A DNA stretch of 64,000 nt from Epiperipatus broadwayi (GCA_028023455.1 JAQFVV010000005.1:14756001-14820000); one strand, 5' to 3'. Shown: positions 2,165 through 53,133, counted from the first letter of the stretch. The notes: a model not told the origin generated them from the letters alone. Translations and numbers: made by a program.

Positions 2165-2725
2165 GGGCACAATATATATATATATATGTAGAGAGAGAGA
2201 GAGTTTTGTCTGTTTTAATAACAGTTATAAGCAAGCATAAGAAATAATGATCACGTGATGTTTATTGACTTAAAACCAATCCTGCCTAATAGGTTAGTGG
2301 TGGCTATGGTTATTAAAGAATCCCAAAGACACCAAAATGTATAGGTACTGAACTGAGTTCAGACCTGTATGATTATATAAACTAATTAGCTTGAATTGAA
2401 ATATTATAGTGTTTTCAATTTAAGTCTCATAGTTTTGTAGTTAAGTAGAAATAAAAGGTGGCTGTTGGTGGGTTGTATTAGTTCCTAAGATCTAGGTGTA
2501 GTGTTCTCAGATTTAAGACTCCTCACTGATGAAGGACACAAGCCAGAAACTAATCTGAGGATATTGGATGAGTAGGCACTAGATGGGAATTTTATGGACA
2601 AGCCTTCTGGCATTCATTGATTACCCTGGTTTGCACTGGGTGGCAATATGTATAAAGTTTTGCCTGTTTTAATACCAGTTATAAGCAAGTATAAGAAATG
2701 GTGGTCATGTGATTTTTATTAACTT
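2165..2725 (+). mobile_element. H1 hammerhead retroelement copy A (one ~454-nt unit plus ~70-nt direct terminal repeat)
   Basis: 2201-2271 is repeated at 2656-2725 (spacing 454). HHR at 2520-2561. No TSD found. Confidence 0.85.
2520..2561 (+). ncRNA. Type I hammerhead ribozyme (H1)
   Basis: TCCTCA CTGATGA aggacacaagcca GAAAC TA ATC TGAGGA: 6-bp stem I, intact core, predicted cleavage after C2555 (AUC). One mismatch in stem II. Confidence 0.75.
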
Positions 2726-5700
2726 ATCTTGTTTTCATCTTTTAAATGTAACTTTGAACAAAAGATATATTATGTCATGCAGGGTAATACATGTTTGATC
2801 ACCTCAAGCAGTGGCTTAAATGAACTTTCTAGAAAAATCACTAGCATATTAATACAGCCAAATTTGAGTTTAAAAAAATTAGAATTGGTTTTTTTTAGAG
2901 GGGGGTGATGCTAACTGAATCCACATCACTCAGATTTTTGGTAATATGACCTCCAACTAGAGGTAAGAAATTTATGTTCCTAGTCTTTCCTAATCACCTC
3001 CATACCTCTATGCTACCATGCCATTCTCACTTGAGAACTGCCTGGATTAAACCCTGAACTAATTCCTGAAAGATGCTAACCATTATTTTTCCTGAACTCT
3101 GTGTTGCTGATCATGCTTTCCATATTTTATTTTTCAGGAGTGTCGACCCGTAGGGCCATCAAGTCATCATGTTGTTGGAAGGTAATCCTGTGTATGCTGC
3201 TAAAACAAACTTTTAAACCTCATTTTATTTAACTATAATTTATTTTAACTGTAATGTAATTCCCCACCTATCTAATAATTGGTGATGTAGTGCCAATTAT
3301 AATAATTCTAATTAATCTTAAGATGACTCTGCTTCTGCAAAACATAAGTGCACTTATTTATGAATCTCTGATCTATAACTGTGTTTCTTAGGTTTCACGC
3401 TTTATTTACATCTTTATTCTGTTAGTGTGGCAAACTTAACCTTAATTAGGTATTGTAATTGAATTGAATTTAATATGCTAATGACTCAATCTAATAAAAC
3501 TGAATTATTTTATTCACCATCCCAATATTATGGGATTCTTAAATATTGCACTATAAGTTTTCTTACCAATTAATAATTGTATATGTTTAATGGCAGACTA
3601 TAAAGTTGTCATTTATGATATCAATTTCCGAATGCTTAACATTATGGGTTTAACTCTATTTTAGATTCTTTAAAGTGGATTTGATGACCTCACTTTTCTA
3701 TTTTATAATTAGTAATTCATTTGTTATGCTATCAAGCATCATAGTTTAACTATATAATTATTTTGGCTGTTGAGCCTAGTTGGGTTTGTTTAATAGAGGA
3801 AACAATATTTTACCCTCCTATTTTTTTTAAAATGACATTTCTAATTAGTATTCACAGTCATATGTGTTCTTTTAAGAATGGATTAATTTCTTCATGTCAT
3901 TATGCTAGATCTGTCAGTGTTATTATGGGCATGACAGCATATTCTGGAGGTCCTGGGTTATTTTTCTTATGACTTGTTTTATCATGGGATATGGAAGCAC
4001 TGACTCAAGGACAGGGTCATGTGGTAGTGAGGTCCTGCATGAGATAATATTGGAAAAACCTGGACCCCAGCATTCCCTATCATCCACTTCCCCAAATACT
4101 ATCTTGTCATAAATGCAGGCAGATTTTCATATTCATTAATATATGATGAAGCTTCTTGGTCCAAAGATGGACTCAACATTTCTTATACTACCATTGTAGT
4201 CAGTACTGCGAACTTATAATTATTTTATATTTTCCATAATAGGTCTATAAGTCATAATGCTATGATTTTTGTAAACCATCCTACTCTTAATCTCTCCACT
4301 CTCTTGGTTAAACATTCTTTTCATATGCAAATGGATAACAGAATTATTAATCTTGCCGAGCCAAATTAGTTATGTGCATATTTACTTCAAATGATTGATA
4401 GAATGTATGATTGTAATCACTGAAATATTAAAATATTTTGCAAGATACTTACACACCGATATGGTGAACCTTAATTACAGGTAATTTTGTATACACAAGG
4501 TTGCATTTCATGTACACATGTCTCATTGATCATTAATTCCATGTCTTGTCTGTCATAGCATAATATGGTAAATCTAATTTAAACTTGATATCTTCTCTCA
4601 GTTAGCATATTAATCGCACTTTCATGAGTACCCATCATATGTTATGTATATATTAATTTTCTATTTGTGCACTCTTTAATACCATCATAATCTATATTTT
4701 GTAATGCATAGTGATAATTTTATAACTTTTCGAGTGTGCAAATCATCAGGTATTGATCACATGAAACCTATCTTGTATTAACTTATGTTGTCACATGTAA
4801 ATAGGCTTATTATTTATGTTTATTAAACTTATATATGTAACTACTCAGGTGTTTGAGTTCTCATTACTTAGATTAATAGTTTTATTAACATTCATAACCC
4901 ATTTTCATTTCAATAACTCATTGTGGGATTGTCTCTCATGTGCATCATGGATAGTTGTTCTATATTATATAACCAATGTTTTTCTTTATACCAATCTAGC
5001 CATTGATACTTCACTAATTTTGTCTTTAGTAAAATATTATTATAACTGGGCAGCTCTTCTTCTAAATGAAGTGTTATTAAATCATTAATTTGATATTCTC
5101 CCTGAAGATCTCTTGTCTCTCTGCTGTGATTCTAGCACTGGAATACATGAAATTCATCTGTTATCAGAGATGTTGTTCATAATGTTATAGATTTAGAGAA
5201 TGGGCAAATAGGGCCAAATTCATGATTGCTCCTAACCTGGGTATCTTGGGCATGATTGGTTTAAGGTACTTTTTTTAGATTCTAACTCTTTCCAGCTAGC
5301 GATACATATTATAATATTTTCATATACATATAAAATGATTAGTGAATTAGAAATAATATCAAATAATGCAGTTCACTAAAAATCTTGGATATAAATTGTT
5401 AAGAAGCAACTAAAATGATCACTCTTATAAAAACAAACGGTTATTAAAAATCTGATAGAAAGAAGAAACAACATTAAAAAATAAACATTCTGAAAAATTA
5501 TTAATAATTCTTTATTTAATAATAAACTTATTTTGGTTAAATTAAATGTATATTAAAGAAAAAAGTAGCATTTTATGAAATAGTTATAGTTTTATTTAAC
5601 TGGGAAAAATTGGACATAAATTTCTACTCAAAGACAAACAATACTTTATTATGGACATTTTTGGTATTTCAGAATTAATTGTGGGTAAAATAAAACTTTT

Positions 5701-6055
5701 ATGCAGAAACACAGCGTCTATAGTAAAAAAAAAAACTATTATTAATTTAACAATAAATTTGCACTGATTCAATTAATAAAACAATAAAATGTAGTGTGTT
5801 TATGTTAAATTTAAAAAAGAATAAAATCATAATTAGGTTTTATTTTTGTGTCTTTGAAAAGTTTAGCAAGTGTCAAAGGCATAGTGGGGGAGACCTCACT
5901 AGTAAATATCTATTTATAAGCACAATCTTTAAACTAATCCACTTTAAACATTTTTCTGATTTTAATAATAGAAAGTTACAATTTATTTTACTAGTATTGG
6001 AAAAAAGTAAATTACAAGGGCTTTGATTTCATTGAAATTATTATTTTGTTTTTAG

Positions 6056-6092
6056 AATTGGGGCCCTTTGGTGTTAGAGTGAACTCAGTTCG
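6056..6092 (+). CDS. SDR gene, 37-nt internal exon, (E)LGPFGVRVNSV(R)
   Basis: Flanked by tttag and gtaag. Encodes the SDR motif ELGxxGVRVNxVxPG in frame with the next exon (CG+C CCT GGT = R-P-G). Confidence 0.85.
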
Positions 6093-6360
6093 GTAAGTTA
6101 TCCTTTTTCTTTAATTATTTTAAACTCAAATCCAATCATTCATAGCACTGTTGTTTATTTTATGACTATTTTTTATAGATGATCATATATTTTTATATTA
6201 ATTGTAGACCTTATCTTTATCTGTTAGCTATCACATGAATAGTGCCACTATCCAAAAAGTCTTTTTAGCCAGAGTTGCTCAAAGAAAAAGAATAATCACA
6301 GATCACACCAAAAGTCTCTGAAATCAACTATTCTTTTTTAAGATATTACTGTACAGTTTA

Positions 6361-7030
6361 AAACAGACAAAACTCTATACTTATTGCCGTTCAATGCAAG
6401 CCAGAGTAATCAATGGATGCCAGAAGGCTTGTGCATAAAATCCCCATCTAGTGCCTACTCATTTAATATCCCCAGACAAGTTTTTGGCTTGTGGCCTTCA
6501 TCAATGAGGAACCTTGGATCTGAGAGCACTGCAGCTAGATCTTAGGATCTAATGCAACCCTCCAAAAGCTGCCTTTTATTTCCACTTAGCTACAAAACTA
6601 TGAATCTTAAATTGAAAACACTATAATATTTTTAATCCAAGTTCATTGGCTTATATAGTCATATAGGTCTGAACTCAGTTCAGTACCTATATATTTTGAT
6701 GACTTTGGTTCTTTAATAACCATAGCCACCACTATCCTATTAGGCAGGATTGGTTTTAAGCCAATAAATATCACATGATTACCATTTTTATGCTTGCTTA
6801 TAACTGTTATTAAAACAGGCAAAACTCTCTATAAGTATTGGCAACAAGCCAGAAACTAGTCTGGGATATTGGATGAGTAGGCACTAGATGGGAATTTTAT
6901 GCACAAGCCTTCTGGCATCCATTGATTACTCTGGCTTGCACTAAATGGTGATATGTATAGAGAGTTTTGCCTATTTCAATAATAGTTATAAGCAAGCATA
7001 AGAAATGGTGATCATGTGGTATTTATTGGC
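6361..7030. mobile_element. H1 copy B: inverted insertion with tail and TSD
   Basis: Minus arm 6361-6844 (one 452-nt unit plus, with decayed HHR at 6470-6509); plus arm 6845-7030 starts in HHR loop II. TSD TTACTGTACAGTTTA at 6346-6360 and 7031-7045. Confidence 0.9.
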
Positions 7031-7949
7031 TTACTGTACAGTTTATTGCCATCACTAATGTAAAATAAATGCATCCACTGCTATCTCAATCCCTGGCAAT
7101 ACCAGAAAGTTGCAGAATGTGAGATTGCTAAAAGATAGTGATAAAACACTGAGATTAATTAATATTAGATGTTTGAGAAAAATGACTAGTTAATTGAAGC
7201 ATTTTACACTGTAAAAAATAAAAGATTTAATAAAGGATACAAAAGTAAAATGCATTGATATGATTAAATGTTTTGAAGTATGAGATTTTGAATTTTATGT
7301 GTAAATTAGACATATTGCAATAAGTTACAAATAAAAGTTTGGTCTTCCAGTCTATAAATCACTTGTTAGAATTAGTGACACATGCTCCATGAGAACAACA
7401 GAATCATTACTTCCTTTAATAATTATAATTTTTATATATAATAATTTTATGTTTATAATATTTTATAAATTTTTTAATAATTGTTTAATAAAAAGGGTTG
7501 GAAGCAAGCATTTATATATTATGATATATTTACATTTATTTTAATTGATCATTAAAGATTAATATAATTTATGCTTTCATAACATGGTGGCATCATTTTT
7601 TTCACAGTCATATATTTATTTGTCGTGTATAAAAATGAATGGATGTATTTTTTGAATAAAATCCATATAGTTTTAAGAAATTATGCCATTGTATGTTACC
7701 ATGATATAACAGCAATACCAAGATATAGATAATACTTTATACCATTATATGTCATTTTTCCCCTGTGAAAGCAAATTAGTAATAAAAACTATATAATACT
7801 TTTTGCCCTATTCTGAATGAAATATGCAATATGGCAAATTTTTTTATTATCATTAAAAGTATTTTTATTAAAATTATTTACATCAGTGAGATAAGAATAA
7901 TATTTTACCCTGCTTTTTGCTTCATATAATACGGAGTTTTATAATGTAA

Positions 7950-8170
7950 TAAATAGAAATAGTTGTAATGCTAGCTGAAATCCAAGTATAAATATGCAAA
8001 TTACTTACAATATTAAAATTATTCCAAAAGTACCTTCTATGATAAACAATCACAAAGTCAATAGACCTCTTATCTATGAGCTTCAAAGATCCTATGGCAT
8101 TAATTTGGACTGGTGTTTGTTTCTCACAGGAATTCATGTGAATTACAGTGATTTGTGTATTTATATTTGG
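7950..8170 (-). mobile_element. Possible Tc1/mariner transposase remnant
   Basis: SPN(L)NAI resembles the SPDLNPIE motif only if a frameshift is assumed; no TIRs found. Confidence 0.22.
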
Positions 8171-9899
8171 AATTCATTTAGTGATTACAACTATTTCTAT
8201 CTATTATTTAGTCATGTTAAGAAGTTTTTCAAAATTTAAAAATGATTACTGTATTAATCTTGTTTTGATACTTAAAATGAAATTGTTAATTTATTAGTTA
8301 TTAAAATGTGTGCTGTGCTTCTTGCATACATAGGTTGATCTTTGCAGTTCATAGATAAAAATTGATTTTTTTATCCATGCTGTTAATTTACAATGTGTTT
8401 GTTTCTTAGAGGAAATACTGCTGGGATGTTTTAACATTGTGAGTGATTTGTGTATTTTTATAATATATATTTTTAAACCATTGTAATTTTAAAGTGAGCA
8501 AAGCTATTGATAAGTGTTGCATAATTGATTCTTTTTTGATAAGGTTGTTTGAACCTATGAGTGTTATTGATAAACAGTAATAATACAAGGGTCCCAAAAT
8601 GTGACATATATGACTGACTGCCATTATCTATTACTTGCAGTCAAAATTTTATTGTGTCTACATCACAGTTAACTAATATTCTTATTTTATTACCATAAGT
8701 AAACATCCAAATATTGTCATTATGTTTAATGTTTTCTTCTTTTGAGAGATGCATTTAGCCAAATTTGTTGCAATGGCTATTTAAAAATTAGACCACTTGA
8801 TTTTCTATTTAATACCTTACTAATTCCTCAATTTAATGATCCTTGTTCAAAGACTAGTCTCATGTTTTTTTTCATGATACCATCTTTCATGTACTGTATT
8901 TTTAAATAAAGACTTATGATTTTTTTTTATTACATCCATATGCTATTTATGTAATAAAACTAATTGATTGGTTTATTGCTGAGGAATTCATAAGAAGTTG
9001 TTTGAGCACCAGAATTTTGGTCCTCTTAATTATTTACAATAAGCTTTAAATAGTCTTTGAAATTTTCTTTATTTCATGTGATATTTATTCCTATTTCTTT
9101 TTTTCATTTACCAGCGATTGATTCTTTTCTTTTACTTCTATATTCAGCTTTTGTTTTTCAATTGTGTACTTACTGGGCTGGCTTTCAATTGTTCTTTCCC
9201 CTTGTTTGAATTCTATTTTATTTATCATGTAATATTATTTGTAAAATGGTAATGTTTAAGCTATAATTACAAACATTGACTGATATTGCAATTGGGTATG
9301 CTTTTAATTCTTAGATTGTTTTACTTCATTTTTTAAGACCATGTAAATGGTTTTTATTATAAATACATTTTCTGCATTTAGTGTAATAGTAGAATAGCAG
9401 ACTCTGGACTGCAACACCTATGGATTATGGCCTGGATCACTTCTGATTGCTTGAACTTCTTAAAAACCTTAAGCAAAAAATTATTTGATGATGATTAATA
9501 ATAATAACCAGTAATAGCAGTAGTATCAGCAGCTGCAGCAGTCACTAGGTGGAGCTTTTCAAAAAGATAAAGTTTTTTTCTCAAAGGTACTCTCTGTTGA
9601 GGGTTAAAATAATTATTAGTTTGAAGGAAAATATTTTAAATGTCAAATATTTTTTAAATTCTAATTCAAATGTTAATATTTCTCATTTAGCTTAGATAAG
9701 GAAAATTCTTATCACGATATAGTTTGTACTGATAATACTACTACAGGAGCAGTGGGAGAGAACAATACCATGTTTGTTAAATTTAAAACTGATTTCACTA
9801 TGTCTGAAGCCTTATCTGATTCTGTTGAAATAATGAAATTTTAAACATAGCAGTATGCCTGCTGCCTTATCTGATTCTATTGAAATAGCTAAGAATATT

Positions 9900-14700: not shown

Positions 14701-15729
14701 TTTGCTGATATTTGCACATTGTTATGTAAAAATTATTGACATGCATGTATAATGCTTACTTTGATTGTTATAGTTTTATTTTAGAATACAGCTATTGTAA
14801 TTCCTTTATCCTTGTGCAAAAATGAAAAATTTATAATTTTATTTATAGAGTATGTAAAATACTTATGTTATCAAATAAAAGTTGTTTAAAATTATTAGTA
14901 GTAATAGTAGTAGCAGTAAAAATTAGCAACAAAAATAAATGTTACTCCACTTGAAAAACATAACTTAAGAATATTATTATATTAATGATTGTAGGTGCAG
15001 ATAATAGAAAGGTCTTCGGATGTGAGCATCAACTGAGAGTAGTAACTAAGCACTGCCTAGTCAGAGAGTCTTGTGAAATATGATGTTGATTCATTAAAGG
15101 TTAAATATTTTAGATAATATAAGCAATCATTTCTGGATGATCTCTGGAATGTTTTTATCTTTATCAGTTTTTTTTATCTCTTTGATGTCAGTCATTTAAG
15201 TTGTTATAGCATCTGCATGTCATGAACTTTTTATTTCATCAGTTTATCCCATATCATTAACAGCATGAGTGATCTGATGTGTTTGTGCAACCACAATCTC
15301 AAATACGCAGTGATTCTTATTTCCATTTTTTCTCTTTTTGTATTTGCAAATTATGTACAGAATCATCCCTGAGATAGCAGTAATAAAAGATTAGTTCAGT
15401 AAGACTGAAGTGCTTCATTGCAATCTTCCACAATATAATCAGCAATGATTGACATTGCAAATATATATCCTGCATAGTTTTGTGCAGAGTAGTGCATTCA
15501 GAATCAAAGGCCTATAGATTGAATCTCAGGTCTGTTACTTCTGGTGTTAGAACTTTTTAAGCCAGTAAGCAATAATTCATTGTGATATTTATTTACTTAC
15601 TGACACTAGATTATGTCAAAACAGGCAAAACTCACTATATATATTGCCACACACAGCAAGCTAGAGTAATCAATGGATGCCAGAAGACTTGTGCATAAAA
15701 TCCCCATCTAGTGCCTACTCATCCAATAT

Positions 15730-15769
15730 CCCCAGACTAGTTTCTGGCTTGTGGCTTTCATCAGTGAGG
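15730..15769 (-). ncRNA. Type I hammerhead ribozyme (H1)
   Basis: Reverse complement CCTCA CTGATGA aagccacaagcca GAAAC TA GTC TGGGG. Confidence 0.72.
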
Positions 15770-15801
15770 AGTCTTGGATCTGAGAGCACTGCACCTAGCC
15801 A

Positions 15802-15841
15802 CCTCACTGATGAAGGCCACAAGCCAGAAACTAGTCTGGGG
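15802..15841 (+). ncRNA. Type I hammerhead ribozyme (H1)
   Basis: CCTCA CTGATGA A GGC cacaa GCC A GAAAC TA GTC TGGGG; GUC cleavage triplet. Confidence 0.8.
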
Positions 15842-17054
15842 ATATTGAATGAGTAGGCACTAAAGGGGATTTTATGCACAAGCCTTTCGCCATCCATTGA
15901 TTACTCTAGCTTGCTGTGAGTGGCAATATGTATAGTGAGTTTTGCCTGTTTTGACAACAGTTATACACAAGCATAAGAAGTGGTGGTCATGTGATGTTCA
16001 TTGACTAGATTATGTCTAGAGATTTTCTCAGCAAATGATTGCCTAGTTGAGCATTTTTATTGCTAACTATCTTACTTCACTTCCTCACAAAGATGGAAGA
16101 GCCTAAAAAATGGCTTGCATTACAGAATCCATTTAGATCACCATATAATAGAACATTCTCATTCACATATGTGCAGTCGAAATTAGTAATACATATATAT
16201 ATATATATAAACTTTGGATAGATGTAGACTGTACTTGTACTATCTAAAAAAACTCATTATTTAATCACTATACCATGCAAAAAGCTGATCAATCTCTTTT
16301 CAGTGGTCCCAACACATAACAGAATCATATGAAATTAAACAAATGCATAGGAATATATGGGTTTGAGGTTTGGCTGTATTAAGATGAACTGTTGTGTTTG
16401 TGTGTGAGAGGTAATGATCTAACAGTGAATGTTTTAGGTATTGCGATTGGCTCTTGTATTTTTCCAAGTTTGTTTATATAATTATATATTTAGATATTTG
16501 GTTTATTATTCAAAGTTCAATAAATAAATAAAATGAATTTTGTATGACTGTGTATTGTTTGAAGTTCAGCCTTATTGAGATGGGCTATTGTGATAAGTGA
16601 ATGTTTTAGGCATTGTGATTAAAGTGTGCATCAATGCAAGTATGTTTATTTATTTACAGCAGTGGAGGTTAGGAGATATAAAGTTCTGAAGAAGATTGCT
16701 GGGGCAATCGAAACTGTAAGGGGGGGTGGTAAATAAAGCATTGTATAACAGTAGTAAAGTGCATGGATGATTTAGTATTATATGCTTTATTTATTTTGTG
16801 TAATTATTTATTTAATTACATGTTATATGGTTAGCAGTTTACTTTACAAATCATATATTTCCTATATATTTTCTTTAACCATTAATGTCTTTTAATTTAA
16901 GAAAACATTGTTTTAATACGTGAGAATGTATATGTAATTTAAGCTGATATTCATATGATGACCAGCAGTATGTATATATTTAAAACCATTATTAAACATT
17001 TTCCAAAATTAAAAAAATGTATGTTTTATTTATTTATTTTATCTTTCATTTTAG

Positions 17055-20271: not shown

Positions 20272-20353
20272 CCGCCTTGCAAGCAAGTAGTTGGTTGCAG
20301 ACGGGTGTGGGTTCGCGTCCCGGCCGATGTTATGACATATGAAAAAAAAAAAA
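20272..20353 (+). mobile_element. 5'-truncated copy of the same SINE
   Basis: Near-identical to 37565-37650, including the B box and poly(A). Confidence 0.85.
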
Positions 20354-24163: not shown

Positions 24164-24514
24164 ATAATCAAAATTACCCAAGTTCACAACTAAACCAGAC
24201 TATCAAAAAAAAAAAAAAACTCTAGTTTCACTGTTACAGGCAGACTTTTTAAGTGTAAAGAACTATAAAATAACAATATATTTAAACTAAACATTACCCA
24301 CAATTCCACCTACTTTTCATACATCCTTAATATTAAAAGAACTTTTAAACAACAAGCATCACATGATCACATCTCCAATACTAGCACATAATTGTTTATA
24401 AACAAAGCAAAGCAAAACTCCATATAGTAGTGCCACCTGTGCTAAACAGAGTAATTAATGGATGCCAGAAGGCTTGTGCATAAAATCCTTATCTAATGCC
24501 TACTCATCCAATAT

Positions 24515-24554
24515 ACCCAGACTAGTTTCTGGCTTGTGGCCTTCGTCAGTGAGG
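24515..24554 (-). ncRNA. Type I hammerhead ribozyme (H1)
   Basis: Reverse complement CCTCA CTGACGA aggccacaagcca GAAAC TA GTC TGGGT. Confidence 0.75.
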
Positions 24555-24951
24555 AGCTTTGGATCTGAGAGCACTGCATCTAGATCTTAGGATCTAATGC
24601 AACCCTCTAGCAATCACCTTTTATCTCTATTTAACTACAAAACTATGAGCATGAAATTGGAAAACAAAAAATATTTTCAATCTAAGCTCAATAGCTTATA
24701 TAGTCATATGGGTCTGTACTCAGTTCAGCACTCATACATTTTGGTGTCTTTGGCTCTTTAACAACCATAGCCACCACTTCCCTATTAGGCAGGATTGGTG
24801 TTAAACGAGCAAGCATCACATGATCACATCTTCAATACTAGCACATAATTGTTTATAAACAAAGCAAAGCAAAACTCCATATAGTAGTGCCACCTGTGCT
24901 AAACAGAGTAATCAATGGATGCCAGAAGGCTTGTGCATAAAATCCAAAGCT

Positions 24952-24991
24952 CCTCACTGATGAAGGCCACAAGCCAGAAACTAGTCTGGGG
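24952..24991 (+). ncRNA. Type I hammerhead ribozyme (H1)
   Basis: TCCTCA CTGATGA aggccacaagcca GAAAC TA GTC TGGGGA, with stem I extension ATCCAA/TTGGAT beyond an internal loop. Confidence 0.82.
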
Positions 24992-25400
24992 ATATTGGAT
25001 GAGTAGGCATTAGATAGGGATTTTATGCACAAGCTTTCTGGCATCCATTGATTACTCTGTTTAGCACAGGTGGCACTACTATATGAAGTTTTGCTTTGCT
25101 TTGTTTATAAACAATTGTGCTAGTATTGGAGATATGATCATGTGATGCTTGCTGGTTTAACACCAATCCTGCCTAATAGGGTAGTGGTGGCTATGGTTGT
25201 TAAAAGCCAAAGACACCAAAATGTATGGGTGCTGAACTGAGTTCAGACCCATATGTAAGCTATTGAGCTTAGATTGAAAATATTTTTTGTGTTTTCAATT
25301 TCATGCTCATAGTTTTGTAGTTAAATAGAGATAAAAGGTGGTTGCTAGAGAGTTGCATTAGATCCTAAGATCTAGATGCAGTGCTCTCAGATCCAAAGTT

Positions 25401-25440
25401 CCTCACTGACAAAGGCCACAAGCCAGAAACTAGTCTGGGG
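25401..25440 (+). ncRNA. Type I hammerhead ribozyme (H1), core mutant
   Basis: Same motif, but the core reads CTGACAA (G8 to A); probably inactive. Confidence 0.6.
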
Positions 25441-27740
25441 ATATTGGATGAGTAGGCATTAGATAGGGATTTTATGCACAAGCCTTCTGGCATCCATTGA
25501 TTACTCTGTTTAGCACAGGTGGCAATACTATATGGAGTTTTGCTTTGCTTTGTTTATAAACTTTTAAACAAGTTAACTGCTTCAGAATTATAAATTTTTA
25601 ATAATAAAGAAAATTAAAATGTATGATTCTGAAGCAATTAACTTGTTTAAAAGTTCTTTTAATATTAAGAGTGTGTGGAAGTAAGTATAATTGTGGGTAA
25701 TATTTAACATAAACTTGATGTCTTTTAATTCTTTACACTTGAAAAGTTTGCTTGTGGCTGTGGAAACTATTGGTTGTGTTTTAGATTTATTTTCTTTTGC
25801 TAGACTGTTTTAGTTGTGAATATGGAATTATTTTGATTATATACATATATACTGTATATATATACACACACACTCTAGGAAGATTAGACTCCTGATTTAG
25901 TCATATATGTTGTACTAAACTTTAAAATTTTGCACTACAAGAATCTTTAAATAAATCAAATTGAAATAATATCAATTCTGCAAAGTTTCAACTAATTGTA
26001 TACATTATTTATTGCTATATTGATGAATCATTGATAAATGTATATATATGCATAAATAAATTGAAGTTATACCAATCTGAAATGTTTTATTTTATTTATC
26101 CATCATTATGTAATGAAATAAAGTGAACCAATCTCCAAAGAGTATAAGTTTTAGCTAACCACTCTTGACAACTGCTTTTAAAGATAATTGATCTCTGTAT
26201 TAGCATAACTTTATTTTCATGGTTTGAATGTTTAATTTAGTAGATTTAATAAAGACATTTTCCCCCAAATAATTTTGTGTGATCAAATAAATATCTAAAT
26301 ATGTAATTAAACAAACAGAAACACATAAATAAACTGAAGCAAAATCAAATTGTCATCTACAGTATTTTATGTTTTCACTCATCATTATATGACAAAAATT
26401 AAAGTAATCTCTCTTCAAGATACATTTTTAAATAGCAATGAAGTCATATTAATATGGGGATTACCATTTTCAAAGGCAGTTCTCAAGAAAGATTGATCTA
26501 AAATTAACTTAACAATTCACTGATTATTTGGTATATAGATAATTAATTAACTTTTAATTAAAAGGTAAAATAAAGAAAGAAGCCTATAAAAACTCCAGGA
26601 TTTGATTAGACTGGTAAAGCCTCTCCAATAGCTATTCATAGAAGAAAGTATAACCTTTACCAAATAATAATTAAATTGCCATTTTTAACTAAAGTTGTAT
26701 CATTCACTAAGTTGGTCTTAACTAGTTACCTAAAGATAAATCTCACCCTCTTAAAAAAAATTTCAAGTTTACTTAATCTGAATTCAAACCCATGTTGAAG
26801 GATGGCACGTAGATGTATGATCATTGAATAGTACATGTTCTATATGTGGAACAAATATAAATAATAAATTGAAAAATGCCAACACTTAAGTGGTCATTAT
26901 ATATGATTACTTAAAACAACTCTCACCTGTAATATCATCTGAAAATATTTCAATAACTGTTATCAAGGCAATCTTGTGAATAGATACAAATCTCAACAAT
27001 AGTTTCTACAATATATCTGGTAACATTATAAACATAATGACTAATTTTGATATAATTATACATATAATGACTAGTTAGCTGTTGGTATTGTCTCTATTAT
27101 ACTGTGGAAATAGTTAATTTGATAAAGTATAAAAATGATTATCTACCTGCAAACATTTGATTGATATGAAGCTTTACTTCAATTTTTTGGCAGTATTATA
27201 ATTTCATATCATTATTATTGATAACATTTATGATCTATTTAAGAACTTCTACAAGGATGTAAAATTAGATCTTATAGTTTCTATCTCTTTTTGACAATTA
27301 TTACTGAAATATTTTCTATTGACATTTTAAGCATGAAAACTGATTGTGAAATACCATTTTTAGATAGTATTTATCTTTGATTACAATATTTTGTGACTTC
27401 TAGAGATTTATGATTTTGTCATATGGGGTTTGAGCTTAGTCGTTATTCTGGTCACTTGAAAAGAATGCCTCCAGATGTAGTACCCCTGGCAAAACTATCT
27501 CCATTAACATTTCAAATCTATTCTGCTCAAAGTATATTTTTTCAGAACTGTTTTCACAGGCTATATATTTTATTACACATAGCTCCAATGTGTCTAATTA
27601 ATTTTTGATTCCCTATTTCTACTGCAAACATATGGGTAAAAATTAAATACCTTACAAGTAATAATTGTTAACGAAAGTTTTACTACTATCAAAGTGAATG
27701 TGAAAAATATTTCATAATTAAATTATCAATAATTAACTAA

Positions 27741-29510: not shown

Positions 29511-30082
29511 CTATAGGGTATATGAGCACAGACTTTCGCACGACCCACCATTCTCCACTCTATCTCATAACACTGATACACTTGAGACAAATATATCAGT
29601 GTTATGAGATAGAGCGGAGAATAGTGGGTCGTGTGAAACCCTGTGCTCATATACCCTATGTAACCCGTCTTTCAGTTATTACATAGTAGAGATGTCTTCT
29701 CATCCCTCGTATATGTATTAAACAGATTACGTCCTGTACATGAGAGGTCAGATTGACTTAGGTCAATGTGGGTGTGATGAGAATCTCAGCCTCAGAGTGA
29801 CCTTTGAGAGTTCCATCATCAGTTTTTCAATTGGATGGACAGTTGAAGAGTTGAAGTATGGAGTGGATTGAAGCTGGTCTATTAAAATACGAAGATTGGC
29901 TATCTTAATATATATCTGAGCACTTATTGCATATATGTGTAGAGATGATAATCTGGACCCATTGATGATTGCTGGATTATGAGATAGAGTGAAAGTGGTG
30001 GCTCGTGTGAAAGTCTGTGCTCATATACCCCTATATATTACATATATTGATACAGGTATATAATAAACCTGTATTTCAGTTA
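29511..30082. mobile_element. H2 family inverted/tandem insertion
   Basis: Short inverted pair 29512-29590/29591-29660, then a second direct copy of ...gtcgtgtgaaagtctgtgctcatatacc at 29977-30035. The HHR 5' half is at ~29955-29978 with its 3' half deleted. Imperfect TSD TTAATATTT(G)AAAAT at 29497-29510 and 30083-30097. Confidence 0.75.
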
Positions 30083-30747
30083 TTAATATTTGAAAATAAA
30101 ATCATGTGTATTAAAGATCATTTACAATAGTTTTGTTTATTTGAAAAGCAATTTTAAAAAATCAACTTTTACAATCAAAAAAAAAAATCAAAAGGTAACC
30201 TTTACAATCAAGATTAGTTTTTATTTCAATTGTAAATGATTGCTAAAAACATTTTAATCAAAGCATTTTTTAATGTATTAACCATCCTCTTATGTGCGTA
30301 CTGAAAACTTAGAACCAATAATGTTTTTGAAAATCAGTCCACTAATAAATACCTCTACATTAAAAAAAAAAGAGGGCATCCCATTGTCTCATTGCATTGA
30401 TATACAACTCATTGCATTGTCATTGATATATAACTCATACAAAATTTTAGAAAAATCCACTGGATAAAAATATATTAAACTTTGGTCTTAAAATTTTGTC
30501 TAAATAAATAAACAGTTTTTCTATTTTGAATAAAAACATTTAATAAAAACTAATTTTGAGAAACGAAAGAAAATTTCTTATCATCGTTTGCAAATTCATA
30601 AAGAATTTATTTATTTTTGTTGATATTTGTATTTTTAATTCTTTTTATGATAAGAATGTGTACCTTACTTATTTATGCACCCATACCTCTTTAACGCAAT
30701 GTTTATAAAGTCTGACAAATACTTATCAGATATATTTTATACAGAAA

Positions 30748-30980
30748 GACTTTCACACGACCCACCACTCTCCACACTATCTCATAACCCTGATACACTT
30801 GAACACATATATGCTGAAAAGATAAATAATCACCACGTATATTGATTATTTATCTTTTCAGCATATATGTGTTCAAGTGTATCAGTGTTATTAGATAGTG
30901 TGGAGAGTGGTGGGTCGTGTGAAAGTCTGTACTCATATACCCTATATATTACATAGGTATATAATAAGCGTGTGTTTCAG
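30748..30980. mobile_element. H2 family inverted insertion with tail and TSD
   Basis: Arms 30745-30833 and 30840-30930, ~50-nt tail. TSD TTTATACAGAAA at 30736-30747 and 30981-30992. Confidence 0.85.
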
Positions 30981-31007: not shown

Positions 31008-32073
31008 TAGATTCTAAATAAACAGAATGGTTGATTTTAAACCTTGAGAAGGCCACTATCTGCACAATTAACAATAGAAAAGCCTTCAAAAGTATTGGTT
31101 AAATGTTACCTATATCAAGCTAAAGATAACATACATATGTCTTCAATGAACCCATTCCTGTTGCTGAAATAAACTGTGAACTACTAATATTTGTCTAATC
31201 TTACTTTGCTAGTGTTCTGAAATCAGAGTAAAAATGCATTTAAATGGATTAATGGAAACAGAGGCTCTACTATTCAAGCATGAAGAGACTACCATAAAAT
31301 AAAATAAAAACTTATACAAAAAAAGATATGTAATTAAAAACCCATGATAAGATTTTATACTGATATTTTCCTAATAAGTAATTATTTAAGAAAAAAGGCC
31401 TTTGATAATTTTTTGTGTTAAAATAATTATTTTAGACAATCTATTTTATATCTTCTAAAGTGCATTTGTAATTAATGTTTTATCTTTGTATCATTACTAA
31501 TTAATGTTATAAATTAATGTTTTATATATATGTCATTTATTTTAACTAGAACGAGAAAACAGTTCTGTTATTTGTTAACCATTATTTATTGAATGTGTTA
31601 TGAAAGGGGGCATAAACAATTGGTAAAGTGTGTATTTTTTTAATATTCTCTTTTTTTAAACAAAAAATTTAACAGCTTCTTTCCATAACTCTATGTAATT
31701 TAATACTTTTATTATTGCACTTAAATAAGTAGAGAAATATCCAATGAAAATATTAATTATGAATATTGAATTACATATTTTTCTTTTACTAAAATAGCAT
31801 GTTAGTAAATTCCATGTGACATTGGCATCCATAAAATAAGCCACTTTAGATAAGAATAATGGTTGTTCAAATCACATATAAACCAATTCTCTCTAACCCA
31901 GGGGTGGAAGATAACCAGGAAATATAATTCGGATTTTTTTACTGTTTGTTGAAGACCATAATTTGTTTATCTTACAAAAAATATATTAAAGAATGTGTAA
32001 ATTACTCCAAGTAATATAACCCAGTACAGGTAAATAATTAAAACAGATGTAAAAAATTAAAAATGGTTTAAAC
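31008..32073 (+). repeat. 5' LTR
   Basis: Colinear with 35268-36386; the similarity ends exactly at the PBS-like motif. Confidence 0.7.
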
Positions 32074-35267: not shown

Positions 35268-36386
35268 GGGTTGAATTCTGAAATAAACAAAATGGCCGAA
35301 TTTAAGCCTTGAGAAGGCCAATATCTGCACAATTAACAATAGAAATGCTTTCAAAAGTATTAATTAAATGTTACCTATGTCAGGCTAAAATAACATACAG
35401 CTGTCATTGCTGAACACATTCCTGTTTCTGAAATGGAGCTGTGAACCACTAATAACTACCTAATCCTAGTTTGATGTCATCCTGAAATCAGAGAGTGAAA
35501 ATTCATTTACAAAATCAACTCCAGTCAATCTAACAGAAATAAATTAATGAGAAATTAAGAGACTACTATTCCAGCATGTCAAGCCATTACCATAAAGTAA
35601 ATAGACTTATACAGAATAAGGTGCCCATAATTAAAAATCTGTGATAAGATTTTAGATTGATATTTTTCTAATAAGTAATTATTTAAGAAAAAAGATCTTT
35701 GATAATCATTTGAGTTAAAATATTTTTTTTAGACAATCTATTTTATATCTTCTAAAATATGTTTGTAATTAATGTTTTATCTTTGTATCATTACTAATTA
35801 ATGTTATAAATTTGTATCATTTATTTTAACTAAAACAAGAAAATAGTTCTGCTGTTTGTTAACAATTATTTATTGAATGTATTGTGGAAGGGGATATAAA
35901 TGAGCTGCAAAAGCGTGTATTTTTTATATTATTAATTTATTCTTTAATTCTTCTTTCTTAAACAAAAAATCTCAACAGTTTCTTTCCGTAACTCTATACA
36001 ATTTAATATTATTATTACTGCATTTAAATAAGCAGAGAAATTTTCGATGAAAATATTAATTATGAATATTAAATCATATTTTTTCTTTTACTAAGACAGC
36101 ATGTTAACAAATATTACATTCACCCTAGCATCCATAATATGTTTTACATAAGAATAATGGTTGTTCAAACTGTGCTTGAACCAATTCTCTCTAGCCCAGG
36201 GGTTGAGGATAATCAGGAAATATAATTACGATCTTTTTATATATACTTTTTCTGATTGTTTGCTAAAGGCCATAGTTAATTAATTTATGAAAATATATCT
36301 GAGACATGTGAAGGACCCCAAGTAACTGATAACCCCGTACAGACATATTAATTAAAATAAATGTACAAATTTAGGAATGGTTTAAT
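35268..36386 (+). repeat. 3' LTR
   Basis: Colinear with 31008-32073. Confidence 0.7.
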
Positions 36387-37532: not shown

Positions 37533-37650
37533 GTCAAGCGTTGTTAGCCGAGAGGTCATCGCATCCGCCTTGCAAGCAAGTAGTTGGTTGCAGACGGTTG
37601 TGGGTTCGCGTCCCGGCCGATGCTATGACATATGAGAAAAAAAAAAAAAA
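37533..37650 (+). mobile_element. Full-length tRNA-derived SINE (~118 nt) with poly(A) and TSD
   Basis: A box TAGCCGAGAGG (37545-37555), B box GGTTCGCGTCC (37603-37613), poly(A). TSD AAGAGTACTTTCT at 37520-37532 and 37650-37662. Confidence 0.9.
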
Positions 37651-38263: not shown

Positions 38264-38279
38264 TGACTATCTAAAATTT

Positions 38280-46796: not shown

Positions 46797-46799
<3 letters not shown>

Positions 46800-46885
<86 letters not shown>
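46800..46885. repeat. (AT)n microsatellite, ~43 units
   Basis: Directly visible. Confidence 0.98.
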
Positions 46886-46887
<2 letters not shown>

Positions 46888-47886
46888 TTAATATAGGGTC
46901 AAAAAGGAGTAACATCAGTGTTGGCATATAACATAAAGAAGAAATATTTTTACCTTTAATGTAAGCCAAATAAAATATAATTTATGATGAGCTCTTTATT
47001 GCATACTAATCCAATCATCAAGGGGAAAAGTAAGACGTTATCTAATACGTATTTAATCCAAATATTTATATACTTACAACACATACATTTTTGTTTGTTT
47101 ACATTAATAGTTGTGTTAAATGTTTTCAATATATTTGATTAACTATCTATGTCATAAATGGTCTTTCTTGTCTATATCATGACTATTTCACATAGCAGGG
47201 CTCCCGACTCACTACAATGACAGATAGGAATCTAAGACACTCAATTAGTTAAAATAAATGAATTAAGAGTTTCAAATAATTTTAGAAAGTGAAAATCATT
47301 ATGGTAATTTTATACATGGTATAAAACTTATTTATGTTAATAGAGACATTGAGTGGCTATTTTTTGTGGGATCAGGGTTTAGATTTGGAAGCAATTATAA
47401 ACAAAAAATAACCATAAATGTCTTATTAAATGTTTTATAAATCTGTTTTAAAATTTTCTTTGTTAAAATATCAATCACTGTAAATATAGTTATTAAATAT
47501 ATTTAAATGTTAAATAAAACTCTTTGTATGTTTTTCTATAGTCAACTTTCAATTGGTCATATCTTCTCACACATCTATGAATATTTTATTTATTTGCATA
47601 TAATTTCACATCCATACCTATCTATATTTCAAGTGATATTAATATAACCTGAATTAGACAATCATGCAGAATCTCCATGGGTTCAAAACTTGGGATAATG
47701 AAAATGAAATGTGACATGGATGAGATAAATTAGGTATATAATTAATATTTGGTTGGTACTTAATCTCTTCTCTCCTAGGAATAACATCAATGTGTGTGTG
47801 ATACATATGGATACAAAGAACAAATATATACTGTTATTCATTGTGTTGACCTCACCAGCCTATTACCATACCAGAAAAGTCTGTTC

Positions 47887-50400
47887 TTACATACGGTGCC
47901 CAGCATGTGGCATGAATATCATGTATTAGTATCACACTTCATTATACATATAAAATATATCCAACTTCTGGTTAATTTGATTTTATATTAATACACAATT
48001 TTATATTTTAATCATAAAACAATAAAACATAAACATATTTTACAAATTTTCTGGATATCACAAATTGAACTTGGATATAGAAATTTACTAAGAATTTAAA
48101 ACACAAAGAAAGAATATTATAGTCAACAATTTAACTTGTGTTGAAAGGAAGAAATTATATACTAAGAGAAAAAGGTCAAATAAAACAACAATTCCTGTGA
48201 ATATAAAATTATATTTTGATAAGAATAGTAAAGTGATAAGCAACAATGAATATTATAGTATAATAAAAATCTTTATTACAGTTTCAAAAGTTAAAATAAA
48301 AAGTAGTATAAGAAAATTTGTTAAAATAAAGTATTAGAAAATTCACGATTATTAGAAGCCAAATTAAAATGTTGCAATTAAAAACAAGTAGTGAAAAATA
48401 AAATGAACTTGAAATACAAAGTAAAGTATATAAAGAAGGAATAGAGAATAATATTTTAGAGTATAGAAAAAGAACAGAACATAGGTGTATCTGGGTGGAC
48501 CATAGTATTTAATGCCCAAGTCCTCAGAACCATTAAAATTCTGGATGAGACAAGGGAAGAGAAAGGGAATGCTAATGATGGATCATTTAAATCAATGATG
48601 TTGATGATCTTCACCCAGATGAATAACAAAATATCCACCAATATGGATAATATGAGAGCAGATCAACAACAAATGTCAATCTATATGGACAATATGGAGG
48701 CAGATATGTCCACCAAGATAGAAAATGTATCTGAAAAGATAGTGAGAACAGATATCCAACAACAGATGGTGGATAGTATAACAGGTGATTTATCAAAAAA
48801 ATTACATAATTTAAAAATTGAATTGAAAGATGAAATGTCCCAAACACAGACTGACATTAATAACAGGATACAAAAAATTGAAAAGGTTACCAAAGAAAAA
48901 GATCTTAATTGTCCAGAAAGATTTATTGAATTCAAAGGAAAAATAAAAAATAAAATGGAAATTGGGTATATGGAAAAAAATATATATATGACAATTTTCA
49001 AGATAAAATTCATTGAGATCAAGAAAAATAAAATAAAAAATCACTAAAAAGATGAAAAGCATCCATGTAAAAATCAATAGTTACAAAAAAGATCAAGAAA
49101 CTCAGATAGATAATCATGAAAAAAAAATTTAATCAATAGAAAATGATTACCAATGTCTTAGCCTTAAACAAAACTTAATGGTACAGAAATAAAACTAAAT
49201 AAAAACAGCATCAAAATCTTATTAGAAAATCATATGAGTATATTGAATCAATTAGAAAATAAGAATACTTCAGTAGATCAAATAATAAAAACTTTGAAAA
49301 ATAAATATGATAAAAAATTACGAAAAATAAAAAACCATACACAAATTTCTCAAAAGATTAAACCTTCTGAGGATGAAGTAAAAACAACCACAAAGAAATT
49401 AAATTGCATATTGGAATCTTAATAGGATGGAAGAAAAGAAATATAAAATTGGAAATCAATATGAAATGAGAAACAAGAGTGAATACATACATATAACAAA
49501 AAATAGTAATGAAAATATTATTTGATCATATACTCAATGCCCAATCACCAATTAATGTCCAAAAAGAATATAGAAACACAGCCATATTCTCCAAACCTAC
49601 ACAATAAATCAATTTGTGAAGTTAAAAATGTTTCAAGATCAGAACAATAAAGCTCCAATTGAACATTTAAACCTATATTTTTCTGTTAATAACAATCTTT
49701 CAGAAAGTGAGAAGTTAATAGGGGTGTATAGCCATCTGCAAGGAAATGCTCTATTTTGGTAGGAGTCATTTTTTCTAGTGCCTAAGACATTTAATGAATA
49801 TTAAACATTGCTAATAAATAATTTTTAGAATAATGATCACCAAGAAGCATTGATAACAAATTTTGCAGGAAAAATATAGAAGTGGTCTGGGTGAAACACT
49901 TACTAAGCTTCTTAGAAGGCAGGTAGCTAAATTAAAAACCTTGGATACATACTATCTTAGCCAAAACCAAATAATTCAAATAGTAAAACATAACTTGCTC
50001 TAAAGATTGAGCAATCATTATTATGCACCAATACACAAAATATAGAACAGATTGCTGATATATTAAACAATGTTGGTACCAATAAGCAGAATATAATGTA
50101 TAAATAAACAGAAAAAAGAAAAAAAGAGATACCCATAAATGCTATTAATACAAAATGAAAAAAAGTAATAACAACCCCAACTATTGGCTAGGGTAAAACA
50201 ATAAAACTATGGTAGCATAGAAAATGAAATAATCAGCAATCTACATCAAGTATCATCCCCCAGTAATATAGAATCCACTAGTAGACAAAATCAACCTCTT
50301 TTTACTATTGGTTTAATGGTCATGCTATCCAGCATGCATTGATTTCTTAGTTATTTTAAGATCAAGAAACTGACGCACATTAAATCTTCATCTGTTTTTA
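47887..50400 (+). mobile_element. Second Gypsy-like remnant (PBS-like, gag, protease start)
   Basis: ...TTACA then CGGTGCCCAGCATGTGGC (47894-47911). Coiled-coil ORF 48595-49047. Retrotransposon-gag motif LQGNALFW at 49736-49759. NGHAI.HALIS near 50315 resembles an aspartic protease start. Confidence 0.62.
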
Positions 50401-51630
50401 TCCATCTTAGGCCTTTTAAACCATTTAATTCTTTAAATAACTCATTAATTGTATTTAATACAATTAATTGTATTTAATACAATATATTATGATTTTAATA
50501 AGCATGTAAATAATTTTAACTTACCAAATATATAACACTAAGAATATAAACCTATTCATGGAACAATTAGTGAATTTATATGATATCTAAAAAAGTAAAT
50601 GAACCTGTAAATAATGCACATCTTTTGTTAACAATGGCAATGGCAATCTATTATATTAGATAAGAGAAGATACTCTTTTAATTGACAAAATTGATTGATA
50701 TGAAAAAAATAAGCATTAGTTACAAGTTCACTTAAATAACTTTATATAGAGCTAAATGTAAATTATCTTAATTGTGGATTTGTATTTGTTTGTTCTCTAA
50801 ATAGGTTAATATACATATATGTACAATAAATTTTCATACCAAATAGAATGATATAAATAAGGTAAAACTCACCTTTTATACCAAATTAGAAAAACAATGA
50901 CATTACAGCTTTAACTATTAATACTTTCTGCAATATGCATACTAAGCAATTAATTAGGCATATGATGTGACATGGAATTATAAATCTCATGCATACAGAA
51001 ATTAATAGCATTATTACATAATTTTACATATTATCCAATACATGCCTGATAGATACAATATTAAGAGAAATATCAAGAATAATTTGGATTCTTTACAAAA
51101 ACTATTTCCAAATGTTATTATGTTACTTTTCTTTAAAATAACCACATATATCTGAGAAAAGCTAATAACTGGTTGTAAAATTAGCCATTAACTACCAAAC
51201 TGTGCACCTTAATGATGTAATGAGGTTTCATGATACAGCTCAAATTTAAAATAATAGAAAAAATTACATTAAAAGATAGCAAGCAATGGCAAATTATTGT
51301 TAATAATGATGATGATAACAAGATTTAGGTAATTTTTACAATCTACCTTCAGGCAGAGAGCTTAACATATATTTTCATCAATCTCCAATATGTTAGTAAT
51401 ACTTTCCAGAGATGACCAGCTGCCACAACTAATGGTACATTATGCAATAATATATGGATAGAAGCAATGGGCTACTTGTTGATAACATCTAAATCTGCCT
51501 TCATTGTAATAACAATTACTGCTGTATTATAATGAATTACAGCTAATGGAGTGGTTGCAAAGGATTTTTAGGAAGCTCAGCTTGGTTCTGCGGTATTCTT
51601 GTTTGATTCTGGAATTATTGCAAAAATGGG

Positions 51631-52241
51631 TAATAAATATGTTAAATACATATAAACCGGTCAAACTTCCTTTAATTAATTAAACAATCCTTTATAGCTA
51701 AGTGCTTTTGGGCAATATTTAAACCCATATTCGTAGCTAATTAACCGATGTACATTGTAATGCTTTTTTAATAATGTATAAATGTTTGCATAAAATATTC
51801 AAATATGCAAATTTCTAAACATTCCATGCCTTGGAGAGTAAAGTAAGCCTTTCTTTTGTTGATAGTGTTATTGTTATTGGCTATCAGATAGGTTTCCTTC
51901 ACTTTTCTTTTAACATCATCTCTCTCAGAACAAATAATGCTGGCTTCAGATGGTTCAAAAATGTGAGTGGTTGTAACTTAGTGCTCCCAGAATATTGACC
52001 TAGTTTCATTTTTATTTTGGGCTTTGTTATACAAATATTTGTGTTAATATATCCTGGTGGCAATATTAACCCATGTTTTCCCAATATATATAGCATTACA
52101 TACAATTTAAGGGCGAGTATTCCATAAACAGCCCCAAAAGCACTTGGATATAAAGGATTGTTTAATTAATTAAAGGAAACTTCACTGGTTTATATGTATT
52201 TAACATATTTATTATTTAATAATTTAACAGTGAATGAAATA
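51631..52241. mobile_element. Penelope-like element 3' fragment with inverted pLTR-like arms
   Basis: Arms 51631-51712 and 52133-52214; the spacer encodes a GIY-YIG C-terminus on the minus strand. Imperfect TSD aattatt(gc)aaaaa(t/c)gg at 51613-51629 and 52242-52256. Confidence 0.8.
51768..52106 (-). pseudogene. PLE GIY-YIG endonuclease C-terminal remnant
   Basis: Single frame with two internal stops: CNAIYIGKTWVNIATRIY*HK...SIFWEH*VTTTHIFEPSEASIICSERDDVKRKVKETYLIANNNNTINKRK, matching PLE motifs YIGxT..R..EH, SA..EH, H.F, R..KE..I..N.LN. Confidence 0.85.
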
Positions 52242-52865
52242 AATTATTAAAAACGGATAATAATAAGAATTTAAATTATTGTTAGAACAAATGAATTTTG
52301 TAATTAAATTACTTATCTGTAATTTCTTAATATAGCATATTTTAATAGTAGGCAATTTTTAATTGTTCTGATCAACGATCTAAGTGATGTATACACATTC
52401 TGTTAAGATTCTATGCTCAAGCTCAGTATTGCCAATTTGATATGCAATTGACCAATGGAGGAGAAAACAACCATGAATAATCCAAGTCTTAGGTAACTCA
52501 CAGAAAGTATCAATAAGTGGTAAATCTTTAAATAGATCACTGCATAGCAAAGGGCTCTTCAAAAACCCTTCAGAGAAGAACAGAGCAAAAGATAGCATTT
52601 ATCAGACTTACTAATTGCTGGGTAATGAGATTTTTGAGAAGTATTTTGCCTTCATTTTACCTTTTAGTTATAAAGAGATAGAAATACCAGCCATGATCAT
52701 TAGCTAGAATAGCAATAACTATCTGTGTTAAACAAAATCCCACATCTGTTGAAATTCAGTTTCCTCAGTTCAGATTCAAACCTAAATCAAAGTTAAGCAG
52801 GAAATTGTGCTACTCTTTCGATACCAGGACTTTCAGTTGATAAGTAAAATATCATTCTTTAAATC

Positions 52866-53133
52866 ACATGACCACCACCTCTTATGCTTGTGTATAACTT
52901 GTTAAAACAGGCTAAACTCACTATACATATTGCCACACCCAGCAAGCTAGAATAATCAATGGATGCCATATCCAAGCCTCCTCACTGACGAAGACCACAA
53001 TCCAGAAACTAGTCTGGGGATATTGGAGGAGTAGGCACTAGATGGGGATTTTATGTGCAAGCCTTCTGGCATCCATTGATTACTCTAGCTTGCTGTGTGT
53101 GGAAATACGTATGGTGAGTTTTGCCTGTTTTAA
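52866..53133. mobile_element. H1 copy E: short inverted insertion with tail and TSD
   Basis: Minus arm 52866-52968 (tail at left), plus arm 52969-53133 with HHR at 52980-53019 (intact core CTGACGA/GAAAC/GTC, decayed stem II). TSD CATTCTTTAAATC at 52853-52865 and 53134-53146. Confidence 0.9.

Follow-up and report, generated by a model that had tools for sequence, protein, structure and literature searches.

Metazoan retrozymes without long terminal repeats (non-LTR retrozymes; Cervera and de la Pena 2020, PMC7229834) are short non-coding retroelements made of tandem units of 170-400 nt, each unit with a type I hammerhead ribozyme (HHR). They are low in G+C, lack long terminal repeats (LTRs), a primer binding site (PBS) and a polypurine tract (PPT), create target duplications of more than 4 bp, and their RNA is predicted to be highly paired. 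Here we describe H1, a family with five insertions in a 64,000-nt stretch of the Epiperipatus broadwayi genome (GCA_028023455.1; JAQFVV010000005.1:14756001-14820000; this whole stretch is referred to as the window), which shares these properties except for the unit length. The H1 unit of 458 nt lies above the length range of the retrozymes cited above and inside the 51-972 bp range of a 2026 preprint (10.64898/2026.07.22.740005). Whereas the described metazoan retrozymes accumulate as circles (PMC7229834), H1 is known here from DNA and predicted folds. H1 is a new, very abundant family within this already described class.

The same preprint argues that retrozyme-type elements derive from Penelope-like elements (PLEs), and the published support for retrozymes as parasites of PLEs consists of co-occurrence and similarity to PLE pseudo-LTRs (pLTRs). 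PLE insertions are highly 5'-truncated partial tandems, often adjoin an inverted 5'-truncated copy and have a tail of 30-40 bp, often at one end only (Craig et al. 2021, PMC8557442). At AT-rich sites, both DNA strands are cut and extended by the purified protein of the anole Poseidon element PAc. It initiates reverse transcription at two internal sites of the RNA, which are adjacent to each other and downstream of the hammerhead, and the stretch that separates them is the tail (Frangieh et al. 2024, PMC11167929). H1 reproduces each of these structural features: AT-rich targets, both strands as primers, partial tandems, an inverted 5'-truncated copy, two internal starts of reverse transcription and a tail at one end. 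It differs from PLEs in encoding nothing, in the length of its tail (typically 49 nt compared with 30-40) and in having no homology to the sampled PLEs of its genome. The distance from the hammerhead cut to the start zones is 120-176 nt in H1 and about 85-120 nt in PAc.

Other described systems share fewer features with H1. Newt satellite 2 and schistosome Sm-alpha have type I hammerheads with a minimal helix III that form double hammerheads in multimeric transcripts, in repeats of a few hundred nt; however, they occur as long satellite arrays or as copies resembling short interspersed elements (SINEs), whereas H1 forms thousands of short dispersed insertions with a PLE footprint. Plant LTR retrozymes (PMC4918200) are likewise non-autonomous hammerhead retroelements and yield circular RNA templates, but they have type III hammerheads in LTRs, a PBS and a PPT, 4-bp duplications and Gypsy enzymes. 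Non-autonomous Chlamys elements such as MRC1 (PMC8557442) are also non-coding; they are PLE-mobilised, have pLTRs and insert in multiple copies head to tail, and in contrast to H1 they are devoid of canonical hammerheads and have 3' ends in common with known autonomous partners.

We conclude that H1 is probably a non-autonomous, non-coding metazoan non-LTR retrozyme that is copied into the genome in trans by the reverse transcriptase (RT)/GIY-YIG protein of a PLE. Both the retrozyme class and its PLE link have already been published; what is new here is the insertion anatomy, which ties H1 to two-site, two-strand PLE initiation. Term searches of PMC7229834 and of the 2026 preprint revealed no mention of inverted twin arms or a one-sided tail.

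H1 in the window and in the genome

An earlier note, made from the window sequence alone, had listed five insertions (2165, 6361, 15618, 24353 and 52866; here copies A to E) of one non-coding unit with a spacing of 449-457 nt, falling into two subfamilies. All five were recovered by blastn with a 449-nt unit (window:24942-25390) and by repeat finding. Copies B, C, D and E, however, proved to be head-to-head inverted pairs and not simple direct copies. The spacing was reproduced in the pairs 24942/25391 (449 nt), 24344/24801 (457 nt) and 2198/2652 (454 nt), and young genomic copies have a canonical period of 458 nt. Since no arm in the window has as many as two full units, Tandem Repeats Finder detected no array with a ~450-nt period there. 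No open reading frame (ORF) of at least 130 aa is located near any of the five sites, and the longest ATG-initiated ORF in a trimer of the unit has 42 aa. The unit has 39% G+C, the surrounding window 27.6%.

The two subfamilies are real: copy D is young and its unit is 96-97% identical to thousands of young genomic H1 copies, whereas copies A, B, C and E are older and differ from D mainly from ~80 nt past the hammerhead cut. First-look searches of the 5.6-Gb assembly, with 40 candidates scored per query, yielded at least 3,656 candidates with the D unit and at least 9,687 with the A unit. The family is present in 20 public runs with nine organism labels from seven studies and is therefore common to related species.

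An alignment of all arms confirmed the motif as it had been described, with stem I UCCUCA/UG(A/G)GGA and the core elements CUGAYGA, GAAAC and GUC (AUC in copy A). The conserved type I core (C3-U4-G5-A6-N7-G8-A9, G12-A13-A14, the A15.1-U16.1 pair and a cleavable H17), here CUGAUGA...GAAAC UA GUC with the cut after GUC, is intact in copies C, D and E, and 51 perfect copies of the 42-nt hammerhead were found in the sampled loci. The earlier note assigned one type I HHR to each unit, but not all units have kept it; in several units the motif is decayed or cut off, by point mutations in the B minus arm and the third D unit, by truncation inside the motif in the B plus arm and by loss of the helix III palindrome in copy A (Table 1). 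The pattern CTGAYGA-N(4-34)-GAAAC occurs six times in the window (2526+, 15740-, 15807+, 24525-, 24957+ and 52985+) compared with 0.23 expected matches. All six lie within H1 and, as members of one family, are not independent. A decayed core, CTGACAA, is located at 25406+.

Insertion anatomy and target duplications

The anatomy was analysed in 23 unique genomic insertions with flanks (from loci L001-L030, some of which are duplicates or haplotigs) and in the window copies. Unit positions refer to a 458-nt reference unit (L007:1501-1958), in which the cut follows position 45. Nearly every sampled insertion is a head-to-head inverted pair with its left arm on the minus and its right arm on the plus strand; this holds for 15 clean genomic insertions and, among the five copies in the window, for B, C, D and E. 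Each arm has a variable 5' breakpoint at the centre, followed by 0-3 whole units and a fixed outer end zone, and arms extend up to 3.5 units.

The outer ends fall into two zones at unit positions 162-177 (short) and 199-223 (long), which corresponds to about 120-130 nt and 155-176 nt downstream of the hammerhead cut. Each of the 19 clean pairs (the 15 genomic insertions and B, C, D and E) combines one short with one long end, in either left-right order. The chance of this result would be ~2e-6 if the arms chose their ends independently at equal odds. The pairs have a one-sided tail of 30-55 nt, typically 49 nt. Three insertions are single-armed (L019, L021 and window copy A), and all three have the long end. 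One apparent short/short combination (L005) is a composite with an adjoining older insertion and not a clean pair; L003, L013 and L027 were also left out of the clean pairs, owing to a gap, a locus end or nesting.

H1 arms pass through the hammerhead cut site uninterrupted, up to three times, and the 5' ends of ~55 arms all lie more than 5 nt from the cut. As arms are longer than one unit and uninterrupted across the cut, their template would be an uncleaved multimer or a circle and not a cleaved linear monomer. The 5' ends are not uniformly distributed but form clusters at unit positions 95-130 and immediately upstream of the hammerhead, a distribution that is biased by locus selection.

The inverted pairs are flanked by a direct AT-rich target duplication with a median length of 13 bp, a value that counts a few bases shared with the element ends; pairing the flanks of different loci as a control gave a mean of 4.4 bp. 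Duplications of at least 7 bp were present in 20 of 21 cases compared with 6.7% of the mismatched-flank controls, and their A+T content is 69-100%. Since the duplication flanks the whole pair, each inverted pair is a single insertion event. Dispersal and target duplications of more than 4 bp are features that H1 has in common with the non-LTR retrozymes.

Predicted RNA fold and sequence conservation

Circular folds were started at the cut, and z scores were obtained from dinucleotide shuffles. The young H1 unit gave a predicted fold of -155.1 kcal/mol with 71% paired and z = -6.9, compared with -107.7 kcal/mol for the antisense strand. The unit of window copy D gave -161.9 kcal/mol (z = -8.1) and -106.3 kcal/mol, respectively. 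The decayed old copy A (z = -2.9) displayed the same sense/antisense asymmetry, whereas ten control windows ranged from z = -2.75 to +1.67 with no consistent asymmetry. The predicted sense-specific fold is rod-like and closes exactly on helix I, and the advantage of the sense strand (~50 kcal/mol) implies many G.U pairs and selection on RNA of the hammerhead strand.

Comparison of the two subfamilies showed 89-94% conservation for the hammerhead and the first 60 nt past the cut and 93% for two internal blocks (181-210 and 331-360 relative to the cut), but 69-77% for the region of the start zones. Covariation of the rod across old copies amounted to 12 compensatory and 84 broken cells, in a comparison limited to two near-complete, decayed copies. 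Small hairpins appeared at the two start zones in global folds and inconsistently in local folds, and we draw no claim from them.

Penelope-like elements in the same genome

The genome contains 10,242 GIY-YIG candidates, with open frames of 780-901 aa. An 859-aa ORF (L061) displayed an RVT_1 domain (44.7 bits) followed by a C-terminal GIY-YIG domain (39.8 bits). This intact PLE (L061:2258-10000) has a period of 3,134 bp and consists of a tandem array, with copies 97.5-99.5% identical, and an inverted 5'-truncated arm that meets the array at 3338, a design like that of H1. Within 260 nt of its start codon no CUGANGA motif was found, and the sampled PLE loci carry a different hammerhead or no canonical one.

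Pfam scans with the entire PLE ORFs, which are rich in lysine, asparagine and isoleucine (L061:4423-6999, L063:5591-8221 and L065:5782-8124), returned nothing, nor did a rescan of the whole L061 and L063 ORFs at E 10, although domain-sized pieces of L061 score well. This silence of whole proteins in Pfam is a trap for the automatic annotation of PLEs in this genome.

Proposed mobilisation of H1 and alternative explanations

The earlier note had interpreted H1 as a self-cleaving RNA that is copied back into the genome by PLE enzymes. Copies, duplications, arms and tail agree with a non-coding hammerhead retroelement of the non-LTR type copied in this way; self-cleavage and a ~450-nt circle, which made up the RNA half of that interpretation, are suggested by in-silico folding. 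In the cycle that we propose, loci with more than one H1 unit would be transcribed, and the type I hammerhead of one unit would pair with that of its neighbour as a double hammerhead and cut after GUC to release 458-nt monomers; ligation of these by a host enzyme of the RtcB type may then give a circle with a high degree of base pairing. The RT/GIY-YIG protein of a PLE would bind H1 RNA in trans and cut both strands of an AT-rich target ~8-15 bp apart. Reverse transcription would then be primed on both DNA strands at two internal RNA sites, ~120-130 and 155-176 nt past the cut, and, with a circle or an uncleaved multimer as template, would run through more than one unit. Once the two cDNAs are joined at the centre, the insertion would have head-to-head 5'-truncated arms between target duplications, and only one of its ends would carry the 30-55-nt tail.

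The constant combination of a short and a long end may go further and record a PLE protein dimer that primes both strands at two adjacent sites of an RNA longer than one unit, be it circle or multimer. H1 would then be a minimal 458-nt template with all PLE cis-signals, and its insertions the first structural, as opposed to phylogenetic, evidence that animal retrozymes use the two-site internal initiation of PLEs; we consider this extension quite possible and put it forward tentatively. H1 displays the PLE footprint at single-nucleotide detail on a 458-nt non-coding unit, which narrows the RNA features that a PLE protein needs, and as a compact substrate it lends itself to in vitro studies of circular RNAs made by ribozymes and of the PLE cycle, which is poorly understood. 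Knowledge of the retrozyme class as such is left unchanged by it.

Several observations weigh against the proposed cycle. Helix I has 6 bp and continues into the long helix of the rod, but in helix II 3 bp rest on an A.A mismatch, and the palindrome ACUAGU is all there is of helix III; in a monomer it would have to form 2 bp with a 2-nt loop, which is impossible. A check against Rfam, which the earlier note had proposed, gave no hit at the gathering threshold and none at E<=10 on 1.35 kb; the best match on 71 nt was the RAGATH-1 hammerhead (11 bits, E 9.9, cut-off 56.3). This negative is weak, since the Rfam models also miss a second, more canonical hammerhead family of the same genome. None of the 20 runs with H1 is on record as RNA; these data are Logan contigs with a guessed RNA status, low-coverage DNA would assemble the H1 repeat equally well, and contigs cannot show ends or circles. 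Those from four of the runs are short, with neither ends nor usable junctions. Among 38 sampled loci of more than 10,000 PLE candidates, there was no similarity to H1 beyond incidental H1 copies. Units within one insertion (97.8% and 97.0% identical) are no more alike than units from separate insertions (97.05%) and give no sign of rolling-circle copying of one circle. Such equal identities fit a recent star-like burst from a homogeneous source and are compatible with circle and multimer templates alike. Moreover, hammerhead cleavage is dispensable for insertion of the anole PLE in vitro, where HHR mutants had no effect and unprocessed RNA was the dominant substrate (PMC11167929).

The anole result, the arms that run unbroken across the cut with no 5' ends near it, the weak helices and the missing Rfam score all speak for an alternative in which the H1 hammerhead is a passenger or relic and no circle is formed, the templates being unprocessed multimeric transcripts of multi-unit loci. 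A circle as template would, however, likewise yield arms that cross the cut. The hammerhead core has been kept between subfamilies that differ by 15-30% elsewhere, and the sense-specific rod is predicted to close exactly on helix I. The weak helices also have a counterpart in the axolotl retrozyme hammerheads, which are weak and require a dimer, and of which one motif (HHR_Amex2) has a U.U mismatch at the base of helix II; equally weak metazoan retrozyme hammerheads cleave as dimers and accumulate as circles (PMC7229834). A cofolded H1 dimer is predicted to form a 6-bp ACUAGU/ACUAGU helix III together with a helix I in trans, at -23.8 kcal/mol compared with 2 x -10.4 kcal/mol for the monomers, which implies that the hammerhead, given its palindromic helix III, would act as a dimer (double hammerhead). 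On balance we regard the passenger hammerhead as possible, though doubtful. It is very unlikely that H1 is the pLTR or a terminal part of a longer autonomous PLE and its copies truncated remnants, even though PLE pLTRs contain type I hammerheads, PLE insertions show heavy 5' truncation and vertebrate retrozymes are sister to PLE pLTRs (10.64898/2026.07.22.740005). In all sampled insertions, the H1 units abut at a period of exactly 458 nt, for as many as 3.5 units, and no coding sequence separates them. H1 is a structural part of none of the 38 sampled PLE loci, and the ends of the intact PLEs among these, which represent four ORF families, are free of H1 sequence.

Tandem copies and an inverted-repeat architecture could also come from satellite or foldback DNA that spreads at the DNA level, by unequal exchange, through extrachromosomal circles or by means of a transposase that acts on inverted ends, and the hammerhead repeats of newt and schistosomes were first described as satellites. 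Such an origin is hard to reconcile with thousands of dispersed short insertions, each with a target duplication of its own that varies in length, with outer ends that are fixed while the inner breakpoints vary, with two ends that are asymmetrical, unlike terminal inverted repeats, and with a strand-specific RNA structure; we hold it to be extremely improbable. Mobilisation by the RT of a long interspersed element (LINE) instead of a PLE appears barely plausible as well. Most SINE-like non-autonomous elements use LINE enzymes, and twin priming by L1 can produce inversions, but H1 has no poly(A) or simple-repeat 3' tail, and two fixed internal start zones, a one-sided tail and inverted twins as the rule are specific to PLEs. 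Separately, the window contains two 3' parts of a tRNA-like SINE (20272-20353 and 37565-37646) that are 96% identical and end in poly(A). It follows that a LINE-type system, whose end structure is quite unlike that of H1, is active in this genome too.

Features of the H1 copies in the window

The coordinates of all H1 copies and their target duplications are collected in Table 1. Old copy A contains expanded (AT)n and (AG)n microsatellites at ~2170-2199. The target of copy D is a hairpin-forming repeat resembling a miniature inverted-repeat transposable element, and the flanks 24320-24350 and 25559-25668 are mutually inverted. Part of the latter flank (25563-25650) folds back on itself and gives spurious matches to microRNA models in Rfam.

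Table 1. Positions of the H1 copies, arms, hammerheads and target duplications in the window
Feature	Position	Strand	Description
Copy A (old subfamily)	2165-2727	+	single arm of ~1.2 units; long 3' end at ~2727
Copy A hammerhead	2520-2561	+	helix III mutated (CUAAUC); AUC cleavage triplet
Copy B left target duplication	6348-6359		ACTGTACAGTTT; right copy 7033-7044
Copy B minus arm	6360-6836	-	~1.05 units; short 3' end at 6360; hammerhead decayed (C3>T, G12>A)
Copy B plus arm	6837-7032	+	5'-truncated inside hammerhead; long 3' end at 7032
Copy C left target duplication	15605-15617		ACTAGATTATGTC; right copy 16004-16016
Copy C minus arm	15618-15798	-	short 3' end at 15618; hammerhead core 15740-15764
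Copy C plus arm	15799-16003	+	long 3' end at 16003; hammerhead core 15807-15831
Copy D left target duplication	24340-24350		AACTTTTAAAC; right copy 25559-25569
Copy D minus arm (young subfamily)	24351-24941	-	~1.3 units; 5' end at centre (unit position 77); long 3' end at left edge (unit position ~221); hammerhead core 24525-24549
Copy D plus arm	24942-25558	+	~1.35 units; short 3' end (unit position ~171)
Copy D plus arm, intact hammerhead	24951-24992	+	cut after 24986
Copy D plus arm, second hammerhead (third D unit)	~25400-25441	+	G8>A
Copy E left target duplication	52854-52865		ATTCTTTAAATC; right copy 53135-53146
Copy E minus arm	52866-52968	-	~103 nt, strongly 5'-truncated; tail and long 3' end at 52866
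Copy E plus arm	52969-53134	+	starts just upstream of hammerhead (core 52985-53009); short 3' end at 53134

A second hammerhead family and a local duplication

The second hammerhead family is located at window:55062-55385, with its core from 55185 on the minus strand, and related pieces were found at 29530-29676 and 30747-30962. It also occurs at L037:1169+, L043:3082- and L007:378-, and near 2 of 30 GIY-YIG loci. Its helix II is more canonical (ACCAA CUGAYGA ... GAAA ... UA/UUGGU, the slash marking the cut). The window copy is again a head-to-head inverted pair, with outer ends ~105 nt past its own cut.

The tail end of H1 (L007:1704-1720, unit positions 204-220, in the long start zone) matches L037:1171-1187 at 16 of 17 positions, or at 17 of 19 with two more bases. 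The matched stretch is the core and helix II of the second hammerhead, and a further GGAGATG is common to both upstream. By a rough estimate, the chance of this match is ~0.005, and, judged by this sequence similarity, the H1 tail may be a relic of a hammerhead of the second family.

The window also contains a local duplication of ~0.9 kb (31016-31941 and 35281-36239), the two copies of which lie ~4.3 kb apart and are 82-91% identical.

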